Shown: in pieces, positions 42,700 through 42,788 of the stretch
Layout of the letters: the number at the start of each line of letters is the position of its first letter
How positions within the stretch are numbered: position 1 is the stretch's first letter
Assembly: GCF_006345805.1 (NCBI RefSeq)
Contig: NW_021833593.1
Span: 1-57,608, forward strand
Direction: 5' to 3'
DNA from: Octopus sinensis
Taxonomy: Eukaryota
Length of the DNA stretch: 57,608 nucleotides
Program-made: the position numbers and the translations under genes
Notes under the pieces: generated by a model
What the model was told of the DNA's origin: nothing
Seen by the model: the letters and a program-made list of their open reading frames with translations, nothing else
Databases searched by the model: none

Positions 42700-42788
42700 C
42701 GTTTGTTCTTCTGGTGGGGGGGGGGGCATCATCTTGTGCGCCGAGACCCTGTTGGGTTTTGTCGACGCCCATTCATATAGAACAAACG
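42700..42788 (-). promoter_or_regulatory. SECIS element, form 2, in the SELENOP 3' UTR
   Basis: AUGAA (42776-42772), helix II UGGGCGUCGA/UCGGCGCACA, unpaired AAAA, CCC-AACA-GGG apical mini-helix, AGAU (42734-42731); helix I CGUUUGUUCU/AGAACAAACG. Confidence 0.85.

Follow-up and report, generated by a model that had tools for sequence, protein, structure and literature searches.

The window analyzed here, a 57,608-nucleotide stretch of Octopus sinensis DNA (RefSeq assembly GCF_006345805.1, contig NW_021833593.1, positions 1 to 57,608), carries on its minus strand a selenoprotein P (SELENOP) gene and, past the stop codon of this gene, a hairpin (42788-42700) with the shape of a type II (form 2) selenocysteine insertion sequence (SECIS). 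We conclude that the hairpin is probably a functional SECIS within the 3′ untranslated region (UTR) of the Octopus SELENOP mRNA and the sole SECIS of that mRNA. What was observed here carries this conclusion: the sequence and structure of the element, their non-randomness, the position of the element, its retention in three octopods, and the fact that no second one could be detected.

Read from the sequence in the 5′ to 3′ direction, the hairpin is CGUUUGUUCU-AU-AUGA-A-UGGGCGUCGA-C-AAAA-CCC-AACA-GGG-UC-UCGGCGCACA-A-GA-U-GAUGC11ACCAGA-AGAACAAACG (see Table 1 for the coordinates of its parts). The core quartet consists of U.U, G.A, A.G and A.A, with the 3′ GA (42733-42732) in register with helix II; a second GA (42730-42729, as part of GAUGA) follows directly after the 3′ core A-G-A-U. 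Helix II has ten positions, eight of them Watson-Crick, one U.G and one G.A. In the apical part, CCC at 42756-42754 pairs with GGG at 42749-42747, to which the minimum free energy (MFE) fold adds one A-U pair. The internal loop has 3 nt on its 5′ side (42778-42776) and 21 nt on its 3′ side (42730-42710). Helix II and the quartet together make 4 + 10 = 14 positions, and the distance from AUGA to AAAA is 12 nt. The 14 positions match the 14-15 reported for human SECIS elements (PMC2761289). Unconstrained folding of 101 nt reproduced all helices (helix I, helix II and the mini-helix) at −27.2 kcal/mol, with z = −2.89 and 1 of 200 shuffles as stable. A 261-nt fold keeps the hairpin and stacks it on extra lower stems, GAAAUUUU/AAAAUUUC and GUCGUUAUC/GAUAAUGAU, which are without support from the O. 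vulgaris and Argonauta comparisons described below.

These results agree with the preliminary description of this DNA, made by eye from the letters. Its form 2 details (AUGA-N12-AA spacing, quartet, 10-position helix II and CCC/GGG apical helix) were all read again from the sequence and refolded unconstrained, and the 10-bp helix I closing an asymmetric loop with a 21-nt C-rich 3′ side was recovered both in the sequence and in the MFE fold. The element was also said to lie on the correct strand about 1.4 kb from the stop, behind (AT)n and (ATAG)n tracts. The stop TAG is at 44206-44204, the AUGA begins 1,428 nt downstream on the same, minus strand, and the tracts were found between the two, at 43179-43777.

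Three poly-C runs are present on the minus strand within 120 nt around the SECIS: C11 (42716-42726), C9 (42788-42796) and C10 (42829-42838). The C11 run is inside the SECIS internal loop, and in Argonauta a C/U-rich tract is found just 3′ of its SECIS. Such runs could be sites for poly-C-binding proteins, or merely microsatellites.

The window was scanned with a descriptor calling for UGA followed by 10-13 nt, an AA or CC motif, a GA and no fewer than 8 helix II positions, and the upper stem-loop of each match was scored by constrained ViennaRNA folding. The element has an upper-stem score of −15.2 kcal/mol; no other AUGA/AA candidate fell below −12 kcal/mol on the two strands of the 57.6-kb window. 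When the whole window was shuffled in 2-kb blocks with dinucleotides preserved and both strands were scanned (115 kb for each shuffle), this energy was reached in 5 of 1000 shuffled windows, with a mean of 0.005 matches at ≤ −15 kcal/mol per window. By our arithmetic, the chance expectation is about 2e-4 if the search is limited to a few kb past the stop on the correct strand. The surrounding 700 nt occur only once in the window, so the element does not belong to a dispersed repeat.

The upstream gene has three exons with AG/GT boundaries and 1076 codons, including 50 in-frame UGAs and no in-frame TAA or TAG. Hallmarks of SELENOP are present, namely a UKPU redox motif (U, selenocysteine, hereafter Sec), orthologues with the PF04592 domain, a His-rich stretch HHPHRHQHYPPPHHH and UQUP repeats. 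The N-terminal domain is 97% identical to the O. bimaculoides "Selenoprotein P N-terminal domain-containing protein", and there is 100% amino-acid identity to O. vulgaris CAI9743234.1 over the shared region, exon 2 included; a SelP_N-domain protein of Argonauta hians also matches. The number of 50 UGAs, given in the preliminary description, holds once a 1-nt deletion at 45543/45544 is repaired; as assembled, the frame is broken there. A tblastn search with homologue P0001 put the break between 45544 and 45538, where one C is gone from a CC pair (AC-GCC in the window vs ACC-GCC in O. vulgaris). The downstream frame is intact (the last 465 codons contain 44 UGAs and no TAA or TAG), so the frameshift stems either from an assembly indel, the likelier case, or from a very recent mutation. 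Folding of the Sec-rich repeats is unremarkable (z = −0.35).

The O. vulgaris locus (L002, GCA_951406725.2) shows 91-96% DNA identity to the window. Its last exon is one unbroken frame with 60 UGAs, or 62 with exon 1, and it contains nine TSUQU units (L002 ~50350-51230) vs six here, corresponding to 62 vs 50 UGAs. An identical 57-nt SECIS core is present 1,400 nt past the stop. Judged from these two sequences, the Sec count appears to shift quickly through gain and loss of 75-nt units while the SECIS stays identical. About 130 nt around the SECIS are identical as well; the unique flanking sequence is also 96-100% identical, so that the O. vulgaris comparison is without power for conservation or covariation. 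Roughly 800 extra bp at L002 ~55400-56200, relative to window position 41949, are probably a transposable-element insertion.

A more diverged copy was found in Argonauta hians. The locus (L001, 9569-14750) has three N-terminal coding exons with 3 UGAs, an ORF stop at 13573 and no Sec-rich tail, and tblastn matched nothing in it to residues 320-1076 of the Octopus protein. The tail was either lost in Argonauta or gained in the Octopus lineage. A SECIS-like sequence is present at L001 14695-14747, ~1.1 kb 3′ of the SELENOP stop and on the same strand, and reads AUGA-C-UGGGAGUCGAU-AAAU-CC-CCACAA-GG-C-GUUGAC-G-UCCCA-C-GA-U-GAAUAAA. R1, a covariance model made from no sequence other than that of Octopus, was used to search 139 kb on both strands (278 kb) at E ≤ 10. 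It returned three matches, the two Octopus elements and the Argonauta copy (13.7 bits, E = 1.1). The score of the Argonauta copy would be marginal alone, but the copy is located where a SECIS is expected.

In a model-guided alignment of the ten helix II pairs of Octopus and Argonauta, six pairs are invariant and none is broken. Two one-sided changes are compatible with pairing (U.G to U-A and G-C to G.U), one change is compensatory (C-G to A-U), and where Octopus has the G.A mismatch, Argonauta has a G-C pair. The covariation check proposed in the preliminary description thus revealed pair-preserving changes in helix II, but these do not reach significance, since 237 of 500 shuffles did as well with two distinct sequences only; they appear supportive, not decisive. 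Also kept in Argonauta are AUGA, AAA, two central C-G pairs of helix III only and the 3′ GAUGA. No synteny was found between the Argonauta locus and the downstream part of the window, RPL37 being absent from the window. A type II architecture, a place on the coding strand past a genuine SELENOP gene and retention in two other octopods all support the SECIS assignment made in the preliminary description.

The Octopus and Argonauta proteins also differ in their Sec positions. The redox motif is U-K-P-U in Octopus (window 49560-49549) and U-K-S-C in Argonauta (L001 ~9990), and Octopus GICMSYYF corresponds to Argonauta GIUMTYYF; Sec/Cys exchanges thus go both ways. A profile-based protein search reached no squid, cuttlefish or bivalve, and an exact-match scan of metagenome contigs for the SECIS core gave no match.

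The preliminary description found no second SECIS by eye, and this held in every scan and every covariance-model and Rfam search made. A first loose pattern scan gave ~150 matches and was uninformative, and stricter scans were substituted for it. With the strict descriptor scan, neither strand of the window gave a second credible SECIS. The same scan, run without an energy cut-off along the minus strand between 44204 and 25000, returned nothing else below −2.5 kcal/mol. A relaxed scan allowing bulges and AG/GA apical motifs, run on the minus strand from 44204 to 1, gave no credible second SECIS. A covariance model built from Octopus and Argonauta (R2) was run with filters off on 30000-50000, where its next-best match scored 10.7 bits and was without the UGA/GA core; Rfam at E ≤ 10 detected no SECIS in 38000-48000. 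Scans of the O. vulgaris locus from the stop codon to the locus end (7.2 kb) yielded no second SECIS, and in the Argonauta locus there was a single element only.

Four individual candidates were considered and rejected. The sequence at 43935-43873 has a GUGA core and a helix II of only ~6 bp and coincides with a donor-like GGTGAGT. The one at 39851-39794 folds at −2.5 kcal/mol into a branched structure and has a similar sequence at O. vulgaris 56407, so it is likely a repeat. The candidate at 16374-16303 is 26 kb off and consists of an 8-bp helix followed by a 16-nt loop. The next-best match of model R2, at 45667-45713, is inside the coding sequence.

As a positive control we used a SELENOP-like locus of the sea anemone Actinia tenebrosa (L003). 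Both the strict scan and the Rfam SECIS_1 model found two SECIS behind it, at 11467-11529 and 11605-11671 (140 nt apart; 38.0 and 26.3 bits with Rfam). Because our methods see a two-SECIS arrangement in the control, the single count in octopods is probably not a failure of the tools. Within the limits of detecting canonical-shaped SECIS, the lack of a second SECIS in octopods is probably real. The Actinia locus has two SECIS, yet one visible UGA (in USFC) and no visible Sec-rich tail; the number of SECIS therefore does not track the number of UGAs.

We consider it unlikely that the element is a real SECIS with a partner that was missed, because the partner is non-canonical, lies in a 3′ exon or region beyond the scanned one, or was lost in a collapsed microsatellite. 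Two SECIS, which the preliminary description called typical of SELENOP mRNAs, are the rule for multi-Sec SELENOP (PMC2397514), and in lamprey 1.5-1.8 kb of CA repeats lie between them (PMC13134290). The 3′ UTR studied here is rich in microsatellites whose lengths vary between assemblies, and the octopod element itself escapes Rfam, as a diverged partner could too. Against a missed partner, nothing turned up with three independent approaches that covered 19-44 kb of the coding strand, the assembly of another species (O. vulgaris) gives the same picture, and Argonauta likewise shows one element. In addition, the descriptor is undemanding (UGA, AA/CC, GA and a helix), and it picked up both of the sea-anemone elements, which are AU-rich.

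A functional SECIS could also stand at a distance other than 1.4 kb from the stop in the mRNA, which we regard as quite unlikely. An intron in the 3′ UTR, with its acceptor within or directly past a pyrimidine tract, would take out the microsatellites and bring the SECIS to ~0.45 kb from the stop, and polyadenylation at 43987/43958, where AATAAA hexamers occur, would give SECIS-less transcripts alongside SECIS-containing ones; SECIS content does vary among human SELENOP isoforms (PMC5133445). CTG|GTGAGT at 43935, which resembles a splice donor, is the only GTRAGT site between the stop and the SECIS. Pyrimidine-rich acceptor-like sites lie ahead of the SECIS (including a tract at ~43020-42975 ending in AG), and the donor-like and acceptor-like sites bracket the (AT)n/(ATAG)n block. 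All of these are sequence motifs only, and O. vulgaris is too similar for the conservation of the sites to be judged. Furthermore, an intron more than 55 nt after a stop codon normally exposes the mRNA to nonsense-mediated decay.

Several observations weigh against a functional SECIS. The Rfam SECIS_1 model (RF00031) at E ≤ 10 gave no match to the Octopus element when 10 kb, 201 nt or 65 nt were searched, and no match to the Argonauta element either, while it does score the sea-anemone elements. At the gathering threshold, Rfam likewise returned no SECIS in the whole window; in all these searches of the window the matches were microsatellite-driven false miRNAs only. The 3′ core, AGAU in Octopus and CGAU in Argonauta, departs from the published core consensus UGAN/KGAW (PMC3753652) in that the K position is A or C. 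The 21-nt 3′ side of the internal loop is far above the usual length, and in human GPX3 asymmetric internal loops are tied to weak activity (PMC2761289). A counterpart of helix I is not evident in Argonauta, where AAUAAA comes directly after the core. AATAAA hexamers occur past the stop but ahead of the SECIS, at 43987 and 43958, and the first canonical hexamer past the SECIS is 1.27 kb on, at 41434. The near-identical O. vulgaris flanks and the non-significant covariation, given above, count in the same direction.

By manual comparison, the architecture otherwise agrees with the Rfam consensus almost position by position. The departures are A or C for the conserved U before the 3′ GA, the G.A in helix II, one extra unpaired base and the long 3′ loop side; helix I is present with its 10 bp, but closes a 3 + 21 nt loop. 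An alternative 3′ register through the second GA (UGAU; UGAA in Argonauta) fits KGAW, but places a 3-nt bulge above the core and is less stable by 4.4 kcal/mol (−10.8 vs −15.2 kcal/mol), and was rejected.

It is very improbable that the hairpin arose by chance or is a relic without recoding function, with Sec insertion, if any, driven otherwise or the gene copy being a pseudogene: the missing Rfam match, the non-consensus base before the 3′ GA and the frameshift in the ORF of the window speak for it, but only 5 of 1000 shuffles equal the hairpin, pair-preserving changes are found at the equivalent place in Argonauta, and the frameshift is a single missing C ahead of 465 codons with 44 UGAs and no TAA or TAG, in an ORF that is intact in O. 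vulgaris, and so points to a recent change or an assembly error, not decay.

Among known systems, the putative octopus SECIS is most readily compared with mammalian SELENOP SECIS 1, which has the same type II architecture and the same place past the stop of a multi-UGA SELENOP gene, the octopus arrangement being read from genomic sequence. Mammalian SECIS 1 (form 2) alone suffices for full-length SELENOP (PMC9337670), mice without SECIS 2 make long-form SELENOP with 7.2 Se per molecule (PMC5133445), and SECIS 2 is absent from 10-25% of human SELENOP mRNA (PMC5133445). Full-length multi-Sec synthesis with SECIS 1 alone is thus supported in vitro, in cells and in SECIS 2-less mice (PMC9337670, PMC5133445), and we propose the same role for the octopus element. 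Because one mammalian SECIS suffices, the question of how processivity is achieved is less of a puzzle than the preliminary description implied. Mammalian SECIS 1 differs in having SECIS 2 beside it and 10 UGAs to serve, against the 50-62 of Octopus. In octopods the base ahead of the 3′ GA is A or C instead of U or G, and the octopus element has a 3 + 21-nt internal loop with C11 and no Rfam SECIS_1 match.

Among molluscs, the Pacific oyster (Magallana gigas) offers a comparison. Its SelenoP mRNA was reported by Baclaocos et al. (2019) to have 46 UGAs and two SECIS that are functionally equivalent in vitro; it is said to be translated in full length, with an efficiency of ~5% at UGA1 and of nearly 100% at the distal ones, and to encode a modular, repeat-built C-terminal tail. 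Like the Octopus gene, oyster SelenoP is a mollusc SELENOP whose repeat-built tail holds dozens of UGAs; it differs in its two SECIS, where Octopus shows one. A single SECIS in a SELENOP-family mRNA is also found in vertebrate SELENOP2/SelPb (PMC5133445). The latter has one UGA and no Sec-rich tail and is nearer to the short Argonauta gene than to the Octopus gene. The Actinia tenebrosa locus likewise contains a gene with the SelP_N domain and a UxxC motif, and its SECIS follow a few hundred nt past the stop; unlike octopus, it has two canonical SECIS 140 nt apart and no Sec-rich tail visible in the locus. In place of the canonical two-SECIS 3′ pattern of multi-Sec SELENOP, the window, O. vulgaris and Argonauta each showed one element.

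By analogy with SECIS elements that have been characterised, the hairpin would be included in the SELENOP mRNA, bind SBP2 and be used processively. The tandem sheared G.A pairs of AUGA/GA would form a kink-turn-like core that binds SBP2, with helix II setting a fixed spacing to the unpaired AAA motif, and the resulting complex would bring eEFSec and Sec-tRNA(Sec) to ribosomes paused at UGA. The first decoding event would be inefficient, and downstream UGAs would then be decoded processively through the same element. Most human SECIS elements reportedly support processive incorporation in vitro (Shetty et al. in 2018 are said to have found this). UGA-C is the weakest termination context in eukaryotes. 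In the octopus gene C follows UGA at 41 of the 50 sites, vs 24% C at that position over all codons, and in the O. vulgaris last exon at 50 of 60; the bias is largely due to the repeated UQUP unit, and the sites are not independent. This weak-termination context probably helps decoding.

Other features of the window were noted in passing. Long stop-free ORFs run antisense (44507-45298, plus strand) and out of frame (45210-44578, minus strand) to the Sec-rich repeats. These ORFs result from the composition of the repeats and could lead gene callers astray. At 47020-47560 (minus strand) and 41860-42170, flanking the last exon and the 3′ region, there are tandem and dispersed copies of short repeats that resemble short interspersed elements (GGGGTCGAT...AATCGACTTAA; TTTCAGTCATGTGTCTGTGGCCATGCTGGAGCACC). 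Farther away, a stop-free 896-codon stretch at 16987-19674 (plus strand), GC-rich and highly low-complexity with poly-T/A/D/G runs, possibly represents a coding exon from a neighbouring gene; a shorter related copy is at 21934-22395.

Table 1. Coordinates of the SECIS element and of the SELENOP gene in the window
Feature	Position	Strand	Basis or comparison
Whole SECIS, helix I to helix I	42700..42788	-	MFE fold; best match of descriptor scan; same in O. vulgaris L002 53000-53056
Helix I, 5′ strand	42788-42779	-	10 bp with 42709-42700 (MFE fold)
5′ core AUGA	42776-42773	-	Sequence; AUGAC in Argonauta hians
Fourth quartet position, A	42772	-	Base directly after AUGA
Helix II, 5′ strand UGGGCGUCGA	42771-42762	-	Pairs with 42744-42735 (MFE fold, descriptor scan)
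AAAA motif (AAR), unpaired in MFE fold	42760-42757	-	12 nt after AUGA; AAA kept in Argonauta
Helix III (A)CCC/GGG(U) with AACA tetraloop	42746..42757	-	MFE fold, descriptor scan; makes the element type II
Helix II, 3′ strand UCGGCGCACA	42744-42735	-	Pairs with 42771-42762 (MFE fold, descriptor scan)
3′ core A-G-A-U	42734-42731	-	Tandem G.A/A.G pairs with AUGA; CGAUGA in Argonauta
Internal loop, 3′ side, with C11 tract (42726-42716)	42710..42730	-	Sequence; C11 length same in O. vulgaris
Helix I, 3′ strand	42709-42700	-	10 bp with 42788-42779 (MFE fold)
(AT)n and (ATAG)n microsatellites between stop and SECIS	43179..43777	-	Lengths differ in O. vulgaris
SELENOP exon 1: ATG, signal peptide, SAN-U-K-P-U-L (2 UGAs)	49826-49537	-	Same exon in O. 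vulgaris
SELENOP exon 2 (SelP_N domain)	48563-48363	-	AG/GT boundaries; matches to O. vulgaris and O. bimaculoides proteins
SELENOP exon 3: end of N-terminal domain, His-rich stretch, Sec-rich tail (48 of 50 UGAs)	46942-44204	-	O. vulgaris orthologue intact, in one frame
6.1 tandem copies of a 75-nt (25-codon) unit, TSUQUPSMAVUQUPKGVGQNGEVKM, 4 UGAs each	44617..45076	-	Tandem Repeats Finder, translation

The single SECIS of octopus is a modest variant of a known system, neither a paradox nor a new kind of element. One SECIS for 50-62 UGAs is nevertheless a real departure from the usual SELENOP pattern, common to three octopods, and known biology accommodates it. Tentatively, we suggest that octopods may have cut the widespread two-SECIS SELENOP arrangement, observed here in a sea anemone and on record for oyster, lamprey and jawed vertebrates, to one divergent type II SECIS, which would serve 3 UGAs in Argonauta and 50-62 in Octopus. 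The octopod element is missed by the standard Rfam model, and automated annotation of cephalopod selenoproteins is therefore likely to miss it.

SELENOP is the standard case of processive stop-codon redefinition, and models of this process have relied on two SECIS that share the work between them. If octopods have indeed reduced them to one, the experiment of deleting SECIS 2 has already been done by nature at an extreme UGA load, and the number of UGAs can shift by a dozen through 75-nt units with the recoding element unchanged. An mRNA in which nature combines 50-62 UGAs with a single SECIS would be a clean system for asking whether one element can specialise ribosomes for dozens of recodings, and which SECIS features count in this: the form 2 apex, the odd 3′ core base or the long C-rich internal loop.

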